64,000 bases of DNA from Setoptus koraiensis (lineage: Eukaryota > Animalia > Arthropoda): assembly GCA_048013815.1 (NCBI GenBank), contig CM106586.1:186001-250000 (forward strand). The letters run 5' to 3'. Below the pieces are notes generated by a model. It worked only from the letters and a program-made list of their open reading frames with translations, did not search any database and was not told the DNA's origin. Every line of letters starts with the position of its first letter. The stretch's first letter is position 1. The translations under genes and the position numbers were made by a program. Of this stretch, positions 16,690 to 53,605 are shown in pieces.

Positions 16690-17976
16690 AAAACGCTCCA
16701 CTATCCAATGTAACCATAAACATGTTTGTCAGTGTGTACCTATCAGTCGGTGTGTGCAAAAGAAGGAATTCTTTCTTAACTTTTCTTTACTTAACTTTGT
16801 GCTTTTAAAGAGGCATTAGTTCTGAGAGAAGAAGGAGAGGAAAAAATTATTCGCTCCTACAGACAAACAACCAGAATTTTGATCTCTGATACTACTCATT
16901 CTTTACTTTTCGCCTTCAAATTAGTGGCTGATAGTAGTGCCTCTTAATAGTGTTTTCATTCTAGTGCAGTGATCTCAAATGAAAGCCAATCTAGAGCTAG
17001 CCAAAGGAAGCAAAGAAATTAAAAGTGAAGTTAATCATCGATGATTTATAAAATCAAGTGGATAAAATCAAGTGATTAGTTTGGTTAGCTTTGTTGTGGT
17101 GTGGTTAAGTCAGGTTACTAGATCAGTATCAATAATAATTATAATAATCAGAATAATCAACAGATGCCCTGTCGCAGAATAACAATTGAAGTAAAAGGAA
17201 GGAGAAAAGAAAGACCTGACTAGCTTGTTTGCAAGCTGCTACCATTTTATACTACATATAAATTTATATTGGTGAAGCTTACAGCAGCAACAACAACAAC
17301 AACAACAACAGGTGAAACCATATCAACACAAACCGCACAAAACAGCGCACAGCACAACCACAATCGACACCAACAACGCTGGACAGTACAGGGTGTAAAG
17401 ATGTAATTGAAGCACCGCTGTCATGCTTCATATGCTGCACGTTGAAATAAACTTTGCATTAATCAACGTTGCTGTGCATAAATACCACGCACAGACACAC
17501 TATAGGCTCAGCGTAGTAGTTTAGTGAACATAGAACTCCAAGCCACGGACAACCATCGAATCTAAAGAACTATTCTTCTCTTTGTGTGAGAATGTATGTG
17601 TGTGTGTGTGTGTGTGTGTGCGTGTATGCGTGTGCGCTTATTTGAGTTGAATTCAACTATGCGTGTGTGTGTGTGTGTTAGTGTTAGAAGTAATACAATG
17701 GAAACTGTTGTGTCCAGTGATCTCGCAAAGCATCTTTTATATTCACACCGGAGCCTACTGAAGCAATCAGAATCAATTTAAATTATTATTATTTTTATTA
17801 TTATTTATTGAACATTATATTATTTTTATTATCACAATCGAATTAACTCACGAACAAACCTACATTGAGATCTCACGACATCTTAACACAACACATTCTA
17901 AATGAATTCTATATTATTATTCACACATAACTTAAATCAAATAGCAACAAGTATCACCTAATTCCAAGAGGCCATA

Positions 17977-20900
17977 ATGACCAACAACAACAACCAGCAA
18001 GCTCTTCTAACTCAGCAGCAGCAACAACAACAACAGCAACATCTCCAACAACAACTCTATCAAATTCCCCAACAGATTATATCCAATGGAGATCACCAAA
18101 TTGTGGACGGCTTTGGCGAATCTAATCCCGGTTCAGCCTTCAAGCGTTTCTACCCAACTAACGCTCTTCCTGAAAATGGAAATTTAGCAGGCAACTCGTT
18201 AGGATCAAATCGAGCATCATCAACATCTTCAGTTAATAATCACACTTTGAATTATGCTTCATCATCAATTAATGGTATCAATGGAAACAATGGCATCACT
18301 GGAACGTCGTTTAGTTTACACACGCCAAACCCAAATGGTTTGTTGCACTCGATGTCATCTTCAAATGCAACAATAAATGCCACCAACAACAGTCAACAAG
18401 CCATTCTTACTCAACAACAACATCACCATTTGCAACAGCAACAACTATATCAATTGCAACAGCCAAAACAATTTTTATCAAATGGCCATCAAATTGCTGA
18501 CGGTTTTGGTGAATCTTCCAGTGGCTCTGCCTTTAAGCGTTTCTATCCGACTAGTGCGCTTCCTGAAAATGCAAATATGACAGCCAATGCACTAGAATCA
18601 GATAGAGCATCATCGACATCAGTTGCCACCAATCCTGCATTGAATCACGCGTCACCATCAATCAATGGTATTACTGGCAACAATGCCACTTATGGTGCCG
18701 ATAGCACGTACAGCACTTATGGAACCTACGGCACTAATGGAATATACGGCACTAACGGAGCATACAGCGCTAATAGCACCAATGTCAATAAAGTTACTAA
18801 TGGTGCTAATGGGACCTATGGCACCAATGCGACCAATGCTGCTAATGGGACCTACGCCACCAATGGCACCAATGTTGCTAATGGGACCTACGCTACCAAT
18901 GGCACCAATGGAACCTATGGCACACCTTTTAGCTTACATACACCAAACTCAAATGGTTTGTTGCGATCGATGTCATCCTCAAATGCAACAATAAATGGGA
19001 ATCATATTAGCACTAACAATCAACAAGCCATTCTTACTCAGCATCATCTTCAACAACAACAACAACAACCCCAGCAACCCTCTCAACTGAAACAAACACA
19101 TCTGCCAATAACTGCACCAAACAATCAGCAAATATTGGCAAACCCCAAACAACAGCAACTCTATCACCTACAACAACAACCAAAACAATTCATATCAAAT
19201 GGCCATCAAGTCGCAGATGGATTGGGTGAGGCTACCGCTGGTTCCGCCTTTAAGCGTTTCTACCCAACCAGCGCACATCTTGAAAATGCAACAGGTGGTG
19301 CATTAGAATCAAATAGGGCCTCATCAACATCGCTGGCCACTAACCCCGCATTGAATCAAGGGTCACCATCAATTAATAGTGTCAAAAATAGCAGCAATGG
19401 CAGCAATGGCACCAGTAGCACCAATACGACCAATGGGACCAATATAAAGAATGTCAGTGCAAATAGTATTAATGGTACAAATAGTATCAATGGCACAAAT
19501 AGTATCAATGGCACCAACCGTACTAATGGCACCAATACTATCAACGGCACTGACAGCTCGACTGGCATCAACGGGACGTCTTTTAGTTTACACACACCAA
19601 ACTCAAATGGTTTGATGCATTCAATGTCTTCCTCGAACGCAACAATAAATGGAAATCATATTAACAGCAACAATCAACAAGGGACTTATCAAACGACTAC
19701 AGAGATGGCACAAAACGCTTATCTTCTAGGTTGTTTATTTAAACAACAAAATGAACTCTGGTTGGCAATACATCATTTCGAGAAAGCTACCTCATTTGAT
19801 CCAAATTTTCTGGACGCTTATATTAATTTAGGCAATGTGCTGCAAGAGGCACATGTATACGACAAAGCCGCCACTGCCTTCTTGAAAGCTGTCAATATAA
19901 GCCAAAAACAAAACACCAATCTAAGTTCCACCGCATCTCAAATCAAATATTTACCACATCAACCGTCACAATCGAACGTGCCTTCAATCGCCGATTCATC
20001 AAATATTCATCCGACAGGCTCGATCAAATCGAATAAAACATCTGTCAAAAGTCAATCGTCATTGAACAAGAAAGAAAATAATATTGTCAGCGAGTCAAAC
20101 GTCCCTGTTGTTTCAAGTGCCTCTACCATCTCGGAACCTAGTAATAGGTCGCCCATCCTAGAACCGCGAGTTGTTTCATTTCCACGCATGGATAATCATG
20201 AGATTGAATTCTCCGGTGGAAATAAATTGGGCATTTTTATATCGCATATAAAACAAGGAAGTTACGCAAATTCACAAGGAATTGAAGTCGGTGACAAGGT
20301 CCTGAAAATTAACTCACATTTGATGAAAAACCTTACCAAAGAAGAGGCATACGAATGTCTCAATAATAGCAAAGATCAGCTTGTCTCTATGATTGTACAG
20401 TACGACCAAAATGAGACAAGTGCTACAAATCGTCGAGTTATCAATGGAGATAGTTTTTACATCAAGACTCACTTTTCATATGTAGCACAGAGTAAAACTG
20501 AATTATCTTTCAAAAAAGGAGAGATTTTCCATATTGTAGATACCCTTCCGTTCAGTTCGAAAAGCACAAGATTACAATGTTGGCTGGCTATTCGCGAAGG
20601 TTCGAATGCTGATCAAGGCCTCATACCAAACAAAAATAGTGCCGAAAAATTGGCGATGGAACAAAAATCTGAACCACTCGAACAAAATGAACAGAATGAT
20701 AATCAGAGAGTTAGCGAAGGTGGAGTTGGCTTTTTCAAAAAACGCCTCGCCAGAAGAACTAAATCTTTATGCAGAGATCATTCTGATAATGTGGTCTTTG
20801 AAATTGGATCTTGCAAATTCCCAGCCTATGAAAGGGTCACACTCAAGCATCCCGGGTTCACTAGGCCGGTTGTGATATTAGGTCCGTTAGCTGACATCGC

Positions 20901-21915
20901 GAGGGATAAGCTTCTCAAAGACTATCCAGAGAAATACTCTTATCCTACGGGATTCCATAAGCAAAACGCTAATGATGGCTCAACAACTGTTAGAAATATA
21001 GTTAGACTCAAGTCCATTAGTGACGTGACGGACCAGGGCAAACATGCTTTGTTAGACATGACACCAGCAGCGATTGAAAAACTGAACTTTATTCATCTCT
21101 ATCCCATAGTTATTTTCATGAAAGCTGAGACTAAGTCAATAGTTAAAGAATTCAGAACCAGGGGGGCAGAATCTTTGGATCCGAACGCGAAAGACGAAGA
21201 CACCTTGCGAAGAGTTGGACAGTCCAGCAAAAAGCTTCTGGAACAATCGATGAAGATAGAAAAACTTTGGTCTCATCTTTTCACTGCAACCATGAAACTT
21301 TCGACCATGGGAAGTGAAGTATGGTATAGAAAACTGAGAGAGACAATAGAAAATCAACAATCTGCCAATGTATGGATATCTGAACACAAAGTGGATAAAA
21401 AAGGTTCATCTAACAATGTGAATGAATTTTTGTTTCCATTATCGGCTCCCCCAACTTCATTTTTAGGGGATGAACAGATCGCCAACGATGATATCATTCC
21501 AAAAAATTCTTTTCAGAATGTGAGGACTTCATCAGCTGCACAGGCTCGTTCATTACATAATAGAAATAATTACTCTTCACATAGCATGGCACAAAAGTTG
21601 GCCAAAGCATCAAGCGAACCCAAATTGAATGCTGCAGAACATCTCAACAATGACGACGATGATGAGGACGATGATGACATTATCAAGAAACCGTTTCCAC
21701 TCTATGATGAGTCAAGCAGCGCTGAGTCACTATCCCCGTCACCACAACCGGATTATATTCCAACCCAATATCCGATCGTGCCCCCTAGAGTTCCTAAAGG
21801 TGCATCAACATCTAACTATAGTAATCCAAGTAACCATCACGATTTATACGTTAAATCTTATTCGGATAACAAGTTCCGAAGTGAATATATCAATCAGTGG
21901 TACTGTTGGGATTAA
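17977..21915 (+). CDS. Chimeric ZO-1/polychaetoid-like MAGUK (PDZ3-SH3-GuK) with two OGT-like TPRs and a triplicated Q/N/S/T-rich N-terminus, 1312 aa, single ORF
   Basis: PDZ at ~20161-20403 (EPRVVSF...GGNKLGIFI...GDKVLKIN...LTKEEAY...MIVQY). SH3 at ~20446-20660 ([12 protein letters not shown]...[15 protein letters not shown]...[13 protein letters not shown]). GuK at ~20815-21390 ([33 protein letters not shown]...[21 protein letters not shown]). All three match ZO-1/pyd. TPRs at 19705-19900 ([10 protein letters not shown]...[15 protein letters not shown]) match OGT. PDZ1, PDZ2 and ZU5 are not seen. Confidence 0.9.
18061..19650 (+). repeat. Three diverged in-frame tandem copies of a coding module (GSAFKRFYP...RASSTS...FSLHTPN...[10 protein letters not shown])
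   Basis: GSAFKRFYP starts at 18130, 18523 and 19240. Each copy ends in [23 protein letters not shown]. Spacer length varies between copies. Confidence 0.93.
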
Positions 21916-22457
21916 AAATACACATTCTAACTGAAAACCTACATGATTGAATTTAATCGGTTCTCTTTTGTAGAGCAAATAATGGTTTCATTAAATGATG
22001 CTATCGAGTATATAAAATAAGTTTCTCTTGAATAATTATCTTAGGTATACATTGGCGGCATACAATGGAATCCAGAGTAAACACCCCAATTAGTTGAGAT
22101 CACTGTACTTACTCACTCCACTGACTTACTTGTTTCCATTTCTAGGAGAAAAATTGTCTCTTTTCGTCAATTCATTCAAAAATAAGGTTCGCAAAAGTGT
22201 GAACTATTTTGCAGGAAATCAGAGTGATCCGTGAGTTCGGTGACCGTATCGAGTGAACGTTCATTGCGATTGTTTTTTGTTGCACAAAATAGCGCGCTCA
22301 TCTTGAAGCGAGCCACGTTGTGGCAATAATTTCATGAGTATATCGGAGGATACCAAAAAATAAGGCTTTAGATGGGACATTTTCCATGCCATTCTTATGG
22401 AACTTCAAGATGGATGAGCGAACGAGATTTCTTTCTTGGAACCCCGCAGGTCTTTCG

Positions 22458-23114
22458 TCAGATATTTAGTAAGTTTTTTTCAATATCATGTCGTATTCTT
22501 TCCGCTTTCATTCTACGCGCGTGAGCTAATTTTCTTTCCTCGATATATTTCGGAATGAATTCATCATATTGTAGCTGCTGCTTGTATAGTTTTTCCAGTA
22601 ACTTTTCGCTGTTTGCGTCAGCCGCTAAACTAGCTTCTTGAAGTTTTTTATAAGCATCATCCAAGGGCTTCATACATATTGATTTGACTTGTTCAATATC
22701 CTTTTGAAGATTCTCGAGACATTTACTCAAATCAACTCTGCATTTTACAATAGACGGTTCTCTTGCCCAATTGTTCAATGCACATTCTTTCGTTGATTTC
22801 AATAAGCTATCACGTTCTTTTTCCAGCCGTTGTACCTCAGGCAATGTGCTAATGATTTCATCAATACGGGAATAATCTTCACCGTCTGAGGCTAGTGATT
22901 CTAAATCGTCAACATTGATATGTTTGAGTAATAATTTATACTGTTTCCTCAGGTACTTGTCATCTGTCAAATTGTTGCTGTTTGACGTTTCGTGTTTGTG
23001 GTTCCACTTCATTGTGATTAAATTTTGTTGATCGATACACACAATATCGATAATTGATGTTTTCCAGTCGAAAATTTCAATAATATTCCAGTTTATATGT
23101 TTTTCGCAGCTCAT
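22458..23114 (-). CDS. VPS37: ESCRT-I subunit VPS37 (Mod(r) domain); the start may be the Met at 23012
   Basis: C-terminal SEKLLEKLYKQQLQYDEFIPKYIEERKLAHARRMKAERI matches the VPS37 pattern FIxxYxxxRKLAHxRRxKxEK. Coiled-coil character. Intronless. Confidence 0.75.
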   Translation of the reverse strand: MSCEKHINWNIIEIFDWKTSIIDIVCIDQQNLITMKWNHKHETSNSNNLTDDKYLRKQYKLLLKHINVDDLESLASDGEDYSRIDEIISTLPEVQRLEKERDSLLKSTKECALNNWAREPSIVKCRVDLSKCLENLQKDIEQVKSICMKPLDDAYKKLQEASLAADANSEKLLEKLYKQQLQYDEFIPKYIEERKLAHARRMKAERIRHDIEKNLLNI

Positions 23115-23475: not shown

Positions 23476-24501
23476 ATGGATACACCAACTACCACAACCA
23501 AACAGGAAGCGCTCCAATCTGAAAATGATCGAACATATACAGATTCTAACGGGAATAAAATCTATGGATCAGTAGTGAGCCAAAACGAAGAGGTGGCAAG
23601 TTTGCTCAAATATTTTAGTTTAGATATTGCTCATATGAGATCATTCATTGAGAAAGTGAAATATCGTTGCTCCAAATTACAGCCAGATGAGGAATTGGAA
23701 CTATTAAAACTAACTGTACAATGTATCGATTTAACAACGCTGTCTGGTGACGATACAGCAACAAATGTTGAGAGATTATGTCTGAGAGCAAAAAAGCCAC
23801 TAAATGAAGATGATATCTGTTGTGCGGCCGTTTGTGTTTATCCTGCAAGAGCAACCGATTGTAGACGAACATTCGAGAGGATCGGTGCTAGTTCAAATAT
23901 CAAGACGGCCTGCGTGGCCACTGGTTTTCCATCTGGGCAATACGGATTGAAAACAAGACTTCTAGAGATCAGATATGCCATCGAAAGTGGAGCCAATGAG
24001 ATCGATGTTGTTATAAACAGAACAGCCGCCTTAATGCACGATTGGGTAACAGTATATTCAGAGATTTGTCAAATGAAAGCAGCCTGCCTCGAATACAAGC
24101 AGGAAAATTTAGATGTTCACTTGAAAGTGATCATAGGTGCGGGTGATTTATTAACTAGTACTCCTCGAACTATATACATGGCTAGTCTGATTGCAATAAT
24201 AGCAGGTGCTGACTTTATTAAGACTTCTACCGGCAAGGAAGGGGTCAATGCCACTCTTCCAATAGGTTACATAATGATGCGCTGTATCCTTGATTACTAT
24301 TTGGCGACAGGACTCTATGTGGGATTTAAGCCCGCAGGAGGCATTAGAACGCATAAAGATGCTCTTCACTGGCTGATTATGCTCAAAATGATGCTTGGAC
24401 AAGAATGGCTAAACCCACATTTGTTTAGATTTGGTGCAAGTGGTCTCTTAGATGATGTCGGTAAGCGCATACAAGTCTTGACTGGAAAACAACATGATTA
24501 A
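23476..24501 (+). CDS. DERA: Deoxyribose-phosphate aldolase
   Basis: CIDLTTLSGDDT, AAVCVYP, GANEIDVVI, DFIKTSTGKE, GFKPAGGIRT, FRFGASGLLDD. Intronless, 341 aa. Confidence 0.97.
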   Translation: MDTPTTTTKQEALQSENDRTYTDSNGNKIYGSVVSQNEEVASLLKYFSLDIAHMRSFIEKVKYRCSKLQPDEELELLKLTVQCIDLTTLSGDDTATNVERLCLRAKKPLNEDDICCAAVCVYPARATDCRRTFERIGASSNIKTACVATGFPSGQYGLKTRLLEIRYAIESGANEIDVVINRTAALMHDWVTVYSEICQMKAACLEYKQENLDVHLKVIIGAGDLLTSTPRTIYMASLIAIIAGADFIKTSTGKEGVNATLPIGYIMMRCILDYYLATGLYVGFKPAGGIRTHKDALHWLIMLKMMLGQEWLNPHLFRFGASGLLDDVGKRIQVLTGKQHD

Positions 24502-43340: not shown

Positions 43341-44552
43341 TTATCCCCATCCCCTTTGATGAGCATTTGGTTTGCCACCTTTCATGTGTCGGAAGAAATC
43401 ACGAGAATTTCCATAATTATTGGTCTGATAGTCCGGTTTGAAGTGTTTCGTACAATTATGCGTAGAGGTTCTAGCCAAAAGGTCGTTTAGATCGTAAGAC
43501 GTGGGTGCATGTAATGATTCAGCGTGCAGGGTTTGGTCATATTTAAATTTTTCTTTAGCATCAGAGAGGACTTTATATGCCTCCGAAGCTTCTTTGAACA
43601 GTTTTTCTTCAATTCTACGACTCACTACATCAGCGTCTGAGTGCCTATCTGGATGATGCTTTAGTGCTCGGAGTCTATAAGCACGTTTGAGGTCGCCCTG
43701 GGTGAATTCGCGAGGGAGGCCAAGAATTTGATAATAATCCCTCTTTTTAACTCCTTCACATTTATTTCTCCAATGGTGTAGCGCTAATGTATATTCTCTA
43801 TTATTTTTGTCTAATTCACACATGTATTCGTAAGCAATAGTTGCCTCTTCGAATTTCCCAATGAGCCCATAAAGTTCCGCTCTCTTGAGGTAGGCCTTAA
43901 TATAATTGCTATCTAATTTGACGGCCTCGATGCACTCACTGATGGCAACATTGTTCGAGTTTAATTTCGAAAGAGCCATGGCTTTATTGAAATGCAGGAT
44001 AGCCATCATTTGAGTATCATTAATTTCTTTAGCCTCTCTGAGTGCCCTTGAGTACAATTTGAGAGCTTCCTCATAACGATGACTCCTAAAATTGACATTT
44101 CCTTGTTCTTTCAGTGACATCACCATATCACCTCTGGATGGCGGTGAGGATGGTGGTGGTGGTGGTGGTGGCGAGGATGGCGCTGGTGAGGATAATATTG
44201 GTGAGGATAATATTGGTGAGGATGCTAGTGCTGGTGAGGATGCTAGTGCTGGTGAGGATGCTAGTGCTGGTGAGGATGCTAGTGCTGGTGAAGATGATGG
44301 AGGTGAGGATCGTGGAGGTGAGGATCGTGGAGGTGACGAGGATGGTGGCGGTGAGGATAACATTGGTGAGGAGGACAGTGTCTGTTGTGGCGAGGATGGT
44401 GCTGACGACAGCGGTGTTGATGGCGCTGAATCGCGTAATTCAATTAGAATGGGCTCCTTGTCCACGTCCACGGTAACATTTAAGAATTCAACCTCATCGG
44501 TATCCGTATAATCCTCATCATCAATTAATATAGTTTCAGAAATGAAGCTCAT
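43341..44552 (-). CDS. DNAJC7: DNAJC7-like co-chaperone: 3 TPRs and a J domain, with an acidic/hydrophobic N-terminus and Ser-Pro repeat linker
   Basis: LKEQGNVNF..YEEALKLYSRAL, LHFNKAMALSKL, AVKLDSNYIKAYLKRAELY, then KKRDYYQILG...KRAYRLRALKHHPDRH...FKEASEAYKVLSD...YD with HPD intact. The likely start is MSFISET at 44552; the ORF opens at 44615. Confidence 0.8.
   Translation of the reverse strand: MSFISETILIDDEDYTDTDEVEFLNVTVDVDKEPILIELRDSAPSTPLSSAPSSPQQTLSSSPMLSSPPPSSSPPRSSPPRSSPPSSSPALASSPALASSPALASSPALASSPILSSPILSSPAPSSPPPPPPPSSPPSRGDMVMSLKEQGNVNFRSHRYEEALKLYSRALREAKEINDTQMMAILHFNKAMALSKLNSNNVAISECIEAVKLDSNYIKAYLKRAELYGLIGKFEEATIAYEYMCELDKNNREYTLALHHWRNKCEGVKKRDYYQILGLPREFTQGDLKRAYRLRALKHHPDRHSDADVVSRRIEEKLFKEASEAYKVLSDAKEKFKYDQTLHAESLHAPTSYDLNDLLARTSTHNCTKHFKPDYQTNNYGNSRDFFRHMKGGKPNAHQRGWG
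44140..44420 (-). repeat. Coding minisatellite: 18-bp (SSPALA) x4 plus 15-bp (SSPIL, SSPPR) units
   Basis: GATGCTAGTGCTGGTGAG repeated across 44221-44292; GATAATATTGGTGAG x2; GATCGTGGAGGTGAG x2. Confidence 0.93.
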
Positions 44553-44879
44553 TTTAACAATTAGTTGATTATTAATGATAATAATACATACATACATAGA
44601 TATAAAATAATTCAAGTCGATGCACGAAGTGACGAACTCACCTAATGGAAAAAAATTTCATTCGATGCAGTCAAAACAGCTGCGAATGAAACAACTTGCG
44701 CGCAATTCAAATGCACGATAGAAATACATGGTGTCACATTAACTTTGCAATGGATGCTATACAACATGTGCAACAGAACACATGTGGGCTGGATTGCACG
44801 AAAAGGCATGCAGAGGCAGGTCCGATTAGCAAGACTAGTCAAGTTCGATATATCATAATACACAAATAATTGAAAGAAA

Positions 44880-51838: not shown

Positions 51839-53605
51839 TTAGAAATCATCCTCAAATTGAAAAGACTCCGATGAGCAATCCTGATCCAATTCGACGAGCT
51901 GACCTTCTTTCGCATAGCAAGTTTTGATGTACTCAAATAACTCTTGTTTGGGCGAATTTAGTTCAATTGATTTTTGGACACATTCGAAGTACCCTGCTAT
52001 AATATTGTATAGAGTGGAAACGTTTACTCTTCTTTCTATCATATAACAGTATATATCGTAGATTTCTTTTTTCAATTCTTTATTCAAGAAAGTGAAATAT
52101 AGAATGTCTCTCTCGGCTTGGGAAGCTGCCAGTAACTGAATAATAAACTTCAAATGTTTATCTCCGCCAAATGCACCACATCCCCAATTGCCCGTGGCCA
52201 CTGCGATCTTAATGTCATGACATCTTGCTTTGAACCCACAATAAGCTTTGTTGAGTTCTCTATCTATATAGGTTGGCTTGAATTGATTATAATGTGAGGC
52301 CCTTGTGAACATCTTGGCATCCATTGCTACTACTCGATGCATGCGTCGTCTCCAACTATCAACAGGTGTTTCATCGACAAAATTACCCTTCCACCTAAAA
52401 GTATTGGAGTAACCGTCGTAGGTGTTGTATTGTTCAGCACCAGATATGAAAATTACTTCGTAGTCCAGTAGTCTTTCACAGAATAATCTCGATATAATCA
52501 TTTCTGGACAAATAGAAAACATTATCTCTTCTTGTACACAACCATGTGACAATATGCCCCCTCCAATCATTTGATTTGCAAAATCTACTTGGAGCATGCC
52601 GCGACCTTCTTTCTCAATCCTACCGTCCCATGAAATAGACAGTCGGCATAAGGGTTTTTTTGAACATGTCCAGTCAACAGGGTCTTCTTGATTCAGTGGC
52701 ATCCGAGTAAAACTGATAACTCCGATTGGATTTGTGTCGGTAACTCTCTTGAAATAGTTTATAATACATTTTAACTTTTCAGCTTTGCAACTATTGGATC
52801 CGGATAGTAACCTGAGTTTACATTGTTGATTGAAAGAAAAAAAAGTGGACGATTATAGATCATGATACACACAATAACAATCAGAGAGTGGGCCAAAACT
52901 ACACATGTTCAATTAACCAAGCACTTACCTCCAGAAATTAATATCTGGATAATTCTTATATAGAGTAGAGTTTCTTTTTGGAAATAAACATAAAAAAGCA
53001 TTGGCCATTAAACAAGCTACTTGTTTTTGACTTAGGACCAAAGTCTTAGATTTGTTTTGAGATAGCAGTGGCACAGGTTGAGTCACTATTTCTGGTAGAG
53101 ACAATGCGAGCTCAATGATTCTGGGTAGCAAATTTTGAAAAAATTCCAAGGTCATTGTATCACTAACAGAATCTAGTACGTCCCTAAGCACATTAAAGTT
53201 AAATTCGCTATAGGCTGGATTCAAGTGCTTAATGACTTTTTCCAAATGATCAACTGACTCTATTTTGATGCCTCGCAGTTCGGTGTTAATGAGTTGCCAC
53301 TTCCAGGTAGTACCACCATCTTGTCTAGTTATCATATTGGATGAGTCACATGGTAATAAAACAACTTGTCCCTCCTCATCTTGGCTAATGTGTCTGTAGA
53401 ATTTGGGCGTTGGTGACGGGCAGATTGTGTCCACAAGTGGGGTATCGAACAATATCAATAGTCCTTTGTTAGGTTTCAAGGGCTTCAATTTTAGCGGGCA
53501 GTTTGGCCAGCGATTGAGATCGTTAATGCCGAACGGTAGCTCGTCCACATCGATAAATTGAGCTACTCGAGGAGATTGTGAAGAAGACAACAATGAAGTG
53601 TTCAT
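51839..53605 (-). CDS. PARG: Poly(ADP-ribose) glycohydrolase, 2 exons, ~549 aa
   Basis: join(complement 52929-53605, 51839-52811) with a 117-bp GT-AG intron. LQVDFANQMIGGGILSHGCVQEEI (GGG-X6-QEE catalytic motif), RELNKAYCGF, VATGNWGCGAFGGD. Confidence 0.97.

Follow-up and report, generated by a model that had tools for sequence, protein, structure and literature searches.

What kind of gene joins a piece of O-GlcNAc transferase (OGT) to the core of a junctional scaffold, and what might the captured piece do there? This question is raised by a 64,000-nt stretch of the Setoptus koraiensis genome (GenBank assembly GCA_048013815.1, contig CM106586.1, positions 186,001 to 250,000 of the forward strand; hereafter the window), in which one unbroken open reading frame (ORF) at 17977-21915 on the plus strand, 1312 codons plus stop, represents a chimeric gene. 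No other ORF in the window comes near it in length. A preliminary description of the locus had placed at 19705-21390 a chimera of two OGT-type tetratricopeptide repeats (TPRs; 19705-19900), fused in frame and at a distance of ~90 amino acids (aa) to the PDZ3-SH3-GuK (guanylate-kinase-like) core of the membrane-associated guanylate kinase (MAGUK) scaffold ZO-1, known as Polychaetoid in Drosophila. These coordinates and the peptide quoted with them were correct, the fusion lies within one uninterrupted ORF, and the spacing between TPR and PDZ3 was measured as ~85 aa. We conclude that this is a genuine, translated and lineage-specific chimeric scaffold gene, the backbone of which is a divergent MAGUK of the ZO/Polychaetoid family. 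The encoded protein is laid out as follows (positions are those of the window).

17989-19668, plus strand: three tandem orphan modules (aa 5-137, 138-346 and 347-564), rich in N, Q, S and T; repeat families
19690-19908, plus strand: two TPRs, with predicted helices at aa 572-590, 594-607, 612-624 and 628-644
19726-19908, plus strand: the part in which similarity to OGT TPR6-7 is clear, from aa 584 onward (61 residues, aa 584-644)
19753-19788, plus strand: dimer-interface motif equivalent to residues 206-217 of OGT (in helix B of TPR6), placed by alignment (interface residues from PMC8586251)
19909-20163, plus strand: S/N-rich linker (aa 645-729, 26% Ser), predicted to be disordered
20167-20421, plus strand: PDZ domain of PDZ3 type (aa 731-815), Pfam PDZ 37.6-38.6 bits, aligned to ZO-1 PDZ3 in 3shw
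20458-20637, plus strand: SH3 domain (aa 828-887), Pfam SH3_2 34-37 bits
20809-21396, plus strand: guanylate-kinase-like domain (aa ~945-1140), Pfam Guanylate_kin 40.3 bits, aligned to 3lh5 and 3kfv
21412-21912, plus strand: C-terminal tail of 167 aa with an acidic run and the motif …SSEPKLN…IIKKPF, matched by BLASTP to a short ZO-like relative described below (P0004, E = 3e-8)

To identify the TPR piece, a 93-aa query was searched against all PDB chains. Residues 584-644 aligned with human OGT 196-256 in one alignment of 84 bits, a collinear match of 61 residues, whereas other OGT TPR pairs reached <=26 bits and consensus or designed TPRs at most ~25 bits per pair in the same search. The derivation from OGT that had been proposed for this part is thus borne out. 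A TPR-only search of 5.8 billion protein clusters agreed with this assignment, as the best 120 of 409 matches were all OGTs (64-74% identity). Further, tblastn with two mite OGTs as queries matched 59 aa at 19726-19902 with 68-69% identity and detected no other OGT-like sequence in the 64 kb outside 19726-19935. We therefore rejected the possibility that the piece is an exon of a resident OGT gene. The fragment alone scored 40.3 bits for Pfam TPR_1 (cutoff 27.8) and 35.6 bits for TPR_11 (cutoff 26.8), and it shows the 34-residue helix-turn-helix unit with the canonical pattern of small and large residues. Of the 15 positions that are canonical for TPRs, 13 are retained in the alignment, the exceptions being Y248F and the terminal P256Q.

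What is left of OGT in this protein is small. It holds 2 of the 13.5 repeats, and the GT41 catalytic domain is absent from the ORF (no match to PF13844, Glyco_transf_41). The long superhelix of OGT (11.5-13.5 repeats) and its asparagine ladder are likewise missing from a fragment with two repeats only, in which N196 of the ladder is changed to Leu and N230 is retained. A role in substrate recognition, as first suggested for the piece, is unlikely because two repeats cannot form the superhelical lumen of OGT and N196 is now Leu. The dimer interface presents a different picture. All six residues of the OGT interface that have been probed by mutation (E206, W208, L209, I211, H212 and E215) are identical in the window copy. 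Identity to OGT is complete over W208-A217 and D221-L235, with I207 changed to Leu, and the flanks on both sides of these stretches have drifted. The initial idea of a dimerisation fragment is strengthened by these six retained residues. From these comparisons we conclude that the fragment is OGT-derived, specifically from TPR6-7, and is neither an OGT gene nor an unrelated TPR.

The backbone into which this piece was inserted is of ZO type. Residues ~731-1140 aligned end to end with the crystal chains of ZO-1 PDZ3-SH3-GuK (3shw, E = 1.7e-72; 3tsw, E = 6.4e-72), while matches to Dlg and PSD-95 were far weaker (E = 1e-15 to 1e-24). The Pfam matches to PDZ, SH3_2 and Guanylate_kin were all above their cutoffs and form a contiguous ZO-type core; the PDZ domain retains the GG-N-x-x-G-I-F loop, and 3lh5 and 3kfv, to which the guanylate-kinase-like domain was aligned, are SH3-GuK structures of ZO-1 and ZO-3. 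The PDZ3-SH3-GuK core is shared with ZO-1, ZO-2, ZO-3 and Drosophila Polychaetoid, and the gene nests among arthropod, specifically acariform, ZO sequences. It differs from ZO-1 and Polychaetoid in that PDZ1, PDZ2 (the dimerising domain) and ZU5 are missing and a TPR pair is added, and in that its own first 565 aa consist of an unrelated, triplicated orphan module. The absence of PDZ1, PDZ2 and ZU5, already claimed in the preliminary description, was confirmed in two ways. By Pfam, the ORF has one PDZ only, lacking PDZ1 and PDZ2, and no match to ZU5 (PF00791). By tblastn with three full-length mite ZO-1 proteins, none of the three domains was found in the 64-kb window, including the sequence downstream of the ORF in the case of ZU5.

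Translation of the ORF is supported by its N-terminal part. The three orphan modules, the conserved blocks of which include …FSLHTPN.NGL…, are separated by expandable 9-nt repeats rich in N, G, T and Y; Ser and Thr make up 13% and 11% of the N-terminus. Homologues of the modules were found neither in Pfam nor among 409 fetched proteins. Compared pairwise over 127 shared codons, the modules gave a ratio of nonsynonymous to synonymous substitution rates (dN/dS) of 0.11-0.14 (dN 0.13-0.18, dS 0.9-1.5), and therefore the ORF is translated in frame up to 20 codons before the TPR. The linker that follows the TPR has no homologues.

The continuity of the gene was verified in several public runs that hold the window sequence and come from different studies, the kinds of run being mostly unknown. 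A 15.4-kb contig of run X2, which stems from another study and sample and has a flat, DNA-like depth, covers 19051-22700 with zero differences and spans the junctions between module and TPR, TPR and linker, and linker and PDZ3. Additionally, a contig of run X3 (19650-20110) and two contigs of run X6 (19707-19964 and 19951-20188) are collinear with the genome across the TPR. With public contigs spanning both TPR junctions, mis-assembly is nearly excluded.

We then compared the captured piece with its source to see how it has evolved. Among 119 animal OGTs the 61-residue segment shows a mean identity of 97% (minimum 87%), whereas the window copy is only 62-69% identical to those OGTs and has changed 14 of 52 near-invariant columns. 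By this comparison, it has clearly left the near-absolute constraint of OGT. The 19-20 changes are nearly all conservative (V/L, I/L, V/T, T/S, L/F, K/Q and R/H, with further conservative changes I/V, F/Y, R/K, Y/F, L/V and L/I). For a neutral simulation, the two closest OGTs (L003 and L005) provided the starting coding sequences; mutation was AT-biased, stop codons were disallowed and the number of residue changes was the same as that observed. The observed BLOSUM62 sums of 242 and 238 exceeded the neutral values of 210±9.6 and 201±9.7 (p ~0.0004 and ~0.0002, respectively). We read this as purifying selection on a folded TPR pair after its capture, with the interface residues retained.

The nearest proteins to the window protein are nine short ZO-like products of Logan/ENA contigs (P0001-P0007, P0010 and P0023), all single ORFs, with 55-63% identity over SH3-GuK. 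They are 731-1004 aa long and consist of a Q-rich N-terminus, SH3-GuK and an acidic tail. The tail motif …SSEPKLN…IIKKPF is common to all nine, and a C-terminal …NQNNYHYYNLNKI is found in seven of them. Their N-termini carry a conserved hydrophobic motif (…VPMTTIMIPA…QILVFMIPYM…) unlike anything in the window protein, and neither the N-terminus nor the linker of the window protein has similarity to them. Loci of this type lie at L001:1510-3858, L002:7028-9559, L006:499-3480 and L007:3087-5657. No PDZ domain (PDZ3 included), ZU5 or TPR was found in these relatives, and no PDZ or TPR pieces occur within several kb of them. They thus share SH3-GuK, the C-terminal tail and the lack of PDZ1, PDZ2 and ZU5 with the window protein, and differ from it by having neither PDZ3 nor TPR.

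In a maximum-likelihood tree of SH3-GuK (IQ-TREE), calculated from ZO-type MAGUKs only, the window protein and the nine short-type proteins form a clade with 100/100 support and a long stem (0.62). This clade falls within the ZO sequences of acariform mites (98/94), and in it the window protein is sister to the other nine (100/98). The short-ZO backbone clade is a fast-evolving acariform ZO lineage. It represents either a ZO-1 paralogue or a remodelled orthologue of one mite lineage; the short-type and the canonical ZO contigs all came from different samples, as judged by their accessions. The gene order Pescadillo - Rpp14 - gene - TFIIIC sub6 - ABCF is common to L002 and L007 only, and none of ten neighbour genes of L001 and L002 matched the window by tblastn. 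The nine relatives represent a group of acariform ZO-like proteins without PDZ domains that had not been described before.

Loss of domains and gain of the TPR look like separate events, because the nine relatives also lack PDZ1, PDZ2 and ZU5, yet carry no TPR. The initial proposal that the OGT piece replaced PDZ1/2 is therefore not borne out: the loss of PDZ1, PDZ2 and ZU5 is a trait of the clade and the TPR is private to the window gene. The fusion itself, looked for in related mites, did not recur in any of these nine acariform proteins. A motif scan of 260 ZO-like proteins detected the TPR in none of them. TPR and MAGUK core were not found together in the 5.8 billion protein clusters, either by a length-matched search with TPR plus core or by the TPR-only search, and an exhaustive HMMER search of 1.84 billion representatives with aa 700-1145 returned no protein with an OGT-type TPR and a MAGUK core. 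Short ORFs with TPR, linker and PDZ3 were not found either. The earlier view of a lineage-specific architecture is upheld by all of these searches. As far as they reach, this is a new domain architecture in a known superfamily, with a single genome as its only occurrence to date. Domain shuffling is well known from MAGUK scaffolds, which serve as a textbook example of it, and to our knowledge no MAGUK with a TPR has been described.

How the piece was captured can be narrowed down in part. In many arthropod genomic OGT ORFs (P0249-P0256), an exon starts near …ACYLKAIETRPDF and ends exactly at …KEARIFDR, where an intron follows; this exon takes in the whole of TPR6 together with part of TPR7. 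The window copy continues past this conserved intron site after …ARIFDR. Neat capture of an exon is unlikely, since the fragment crosses the intron site and its 3' end matches no exon end. The OGTs most like the window copy are single ORFs of 978-980 aa on contigs. They include P0128, with which the window copy shares a derived A-T at positions 245-246. At the DNA level the window copy is ~73% identical to the closest OGTs and differs from them at 30-39 of 61 third codon positions, so the capture event is old. No transposon signature, i.e. terminal repeats or target duplications, was found around 19660-19920. Because the closest OGTs are single ORFs, a retrocopy and a DNA-level copy of an intronless parent are equally likely. 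The suggestion that the gene was assembled from intronless copies is accordingly neither favoured nor disfavoured, as a retrocopy and a DNA copy are indistinguishable here. An intronless gene of 3.9 kb is in itself no sign of retroposition, because the surrounding region is intron-poor.

What could two OGT repeats do in a ZO-type scaffold? The OGT homodimer has a small interface of ~560 Å2 located at TPR6-7, to which E206 and E215 contribute polar contacts and W208, L209, I211 and H212 surface-exposed residues; the authors concluded that the hydrophobic network of this TPR interface suffices for OGT assembly (PMC8586251). ZO proteins dimerise via a domain-swapped PDZ2 (PMC6928914). The captured unit is the smallest part of OGT that confers dimerisation on the enzyme, and it sits in a ZO relative without the ZO dimerising domain. 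Most likely the TPR pair acts in pairing, be it with itself, with OGT or with both. We propose that the TPR6-7 pair may serve as a homotypic pairing module by which the scaffold self-dimerises. The OGT-type dimer interface would take over the job of the missing PDZ2 and restore bivalency beside the PDZ3-SH3-GuK core. We hold this reading tentatively and assign it a probability of about 0.45. If the TPR pair self-associates, the gene would be a natural experiment indicating that the TPR6-7 interface of OGT is portable and sufficient alone, and that an unrelated fold can be used to rebuild the dimerisation of a scaffold.

Several points weigh against such a pairing module. A two-repeat TPR without its neighbours may be only marginally stable, and the OGT interface is small. 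On the supporting side, AlphaFold2, run on aa 560-700 only and with an alignment of OGT segments, produced a model with four helices at a predicted local distance difference test score (pLDDT) of ~90 and disordered flanks (pLDDT <50 from model residue 101). The best PDB matches of this model were the OGT TPR structures 6eou, 1w3b and 7ntf (rmsd, i.e. root-mean-square deviation, 0.9-2.9 Å), an agreement with some circularity in it, given that OGTs made up the rows of the alignment. The selection test on the TPR uses a simple mutation model, as there is no TPR-bearing orthologue for a codon-based dN/dS, and stops or frameshifts in the TPR would be purged anyway with the MAGUK core downstream. 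Finally, none of the runs that cross the TPR is of proven RNA type.

The same TPR face could also pair with an OGT monomer. If OGT were the main partner of the TPR pair, the protein would tether OGT to a junctional scaffold or compete with OGT dimerisation, as the preliminary description had suggested. The window copy and OGT have the same interface residues, and since OGT pairs through a symmetric, homotypic interface, there is no evident steric obstacle to a heterotypic pair. Ser, Thr and Asn are also abundant in the protein, and its long S/T-rich regions would be likely substrates of a tethered OGT. However, the 14 changed OGT-invariant columns near the interface helix would be unexpected if the fit to an unchanged OGT surface were dominant. 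As a competitor the protein would have a mild 'poison' effect at most, because dimer-breaking mutants of OGT lose activity only on protein substrate, not on peptide (PMC8586251). Overall, we regard OGT as the main partner as rather unlikely, and it is quite unlikely that the captured TPR6-7 heterodimerises with the animal's own OGT in such a way that the scaffold acts as an OGT adaptor at cell contacts or as a titrant of OGT dimers. Should pairing with OGT nevertheless prove true, the protein would represent a new type of OGT adaptor and the first OGT regulator made from OGT's own dimer interface.

We give similarly little credence to the view that the TPRs are a folded helical spacer, or a site for an unrelated ligand, in which the interface residues are retained for the packing of helix B in TPR6. 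Many TPR pairs bind peptides, and the test of conservative substitutions shows constraint on the fold and not on a specific interaction. Yet W208, L209, I211 and H212 are surface-exposed in OGT, and the unbroken identity over W208-A217 and D221-L235 amid drifting flanks exceeds what is usual for maintenance of a fold.

There is a slim chance that the TPR is a mere passenger, present in the genomic ORF but spliced out in frame or bypassed by a product that starts downstream, and still open since nothing has yet broken it. No proven RNA read crosses the TPR, and the lone run flagged 'RNA?' contributes just one contig, of 160 nt, which lies in the SH3 region. The low-complexity flanks are places where cryptic splice sites are easily found, and X6 has a depth of only 2-4 over 19707-20188, compared with 7-9 over 20379-21931. 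Against this, strong purifying selection acts on the N-terminal modules in the frame of the TPR, so translation starts far upstream of it, and the residue changes within the TPR are not random. Run X6 has an RNA-like appearance, and its contigs pass the TPR unspliced; in these contigs and that of X3, which are collinear with the genome, no credible joint lies inside the ORF. The sole joint has a 21-nt side in low-complexity sequence and was judged spurious. The data allow for transcription through the TPR without proving it.

That an OGT-like piece was misjoined to a MAGUK gene during assembly is highly improbable: the flanking low-complexity repeats do break de Bruijn graphs, and X3 contigs end near 19650-19655, but the single X2 contig runs through the region without a difference, X3 and X6 from further studies carry identical junction sequences, and a piece with no more than 62-69% identity to any OGT cannot have strayed in as a read of a true OGT gene.

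Some further features of the locus were recorded. The depth of X3 contigs along the gene drops ~300-fold from 5' to 3' (682, 245, 61, 29, 11 and 2-5 over 16900-22400). Over the kilobase that precedes the start codon it is 378-528, and the profile is unlike that of whole-genome DNA. A (GT)n/(TG)n microsatellite is located at 17590-17680, ~300-400 nt 5' of the start codon, and is separated from the ATG of the chimeric ORF by a stretch that includes an AT-rich tract (17780-17840). The neighbours are single-ORF animal genes: a Mod(r)/VPS37-like gene at 22461-23114 (minus strand) and a deoxyribose-phosphate aldolase gene at 23476-24498 (plus strand), followed at a greater distance by genes for a TPR-DnaJ protein at 43344-44615 (minus strand) and a PARG catalytic domain at 51842-52702 (minus strand).

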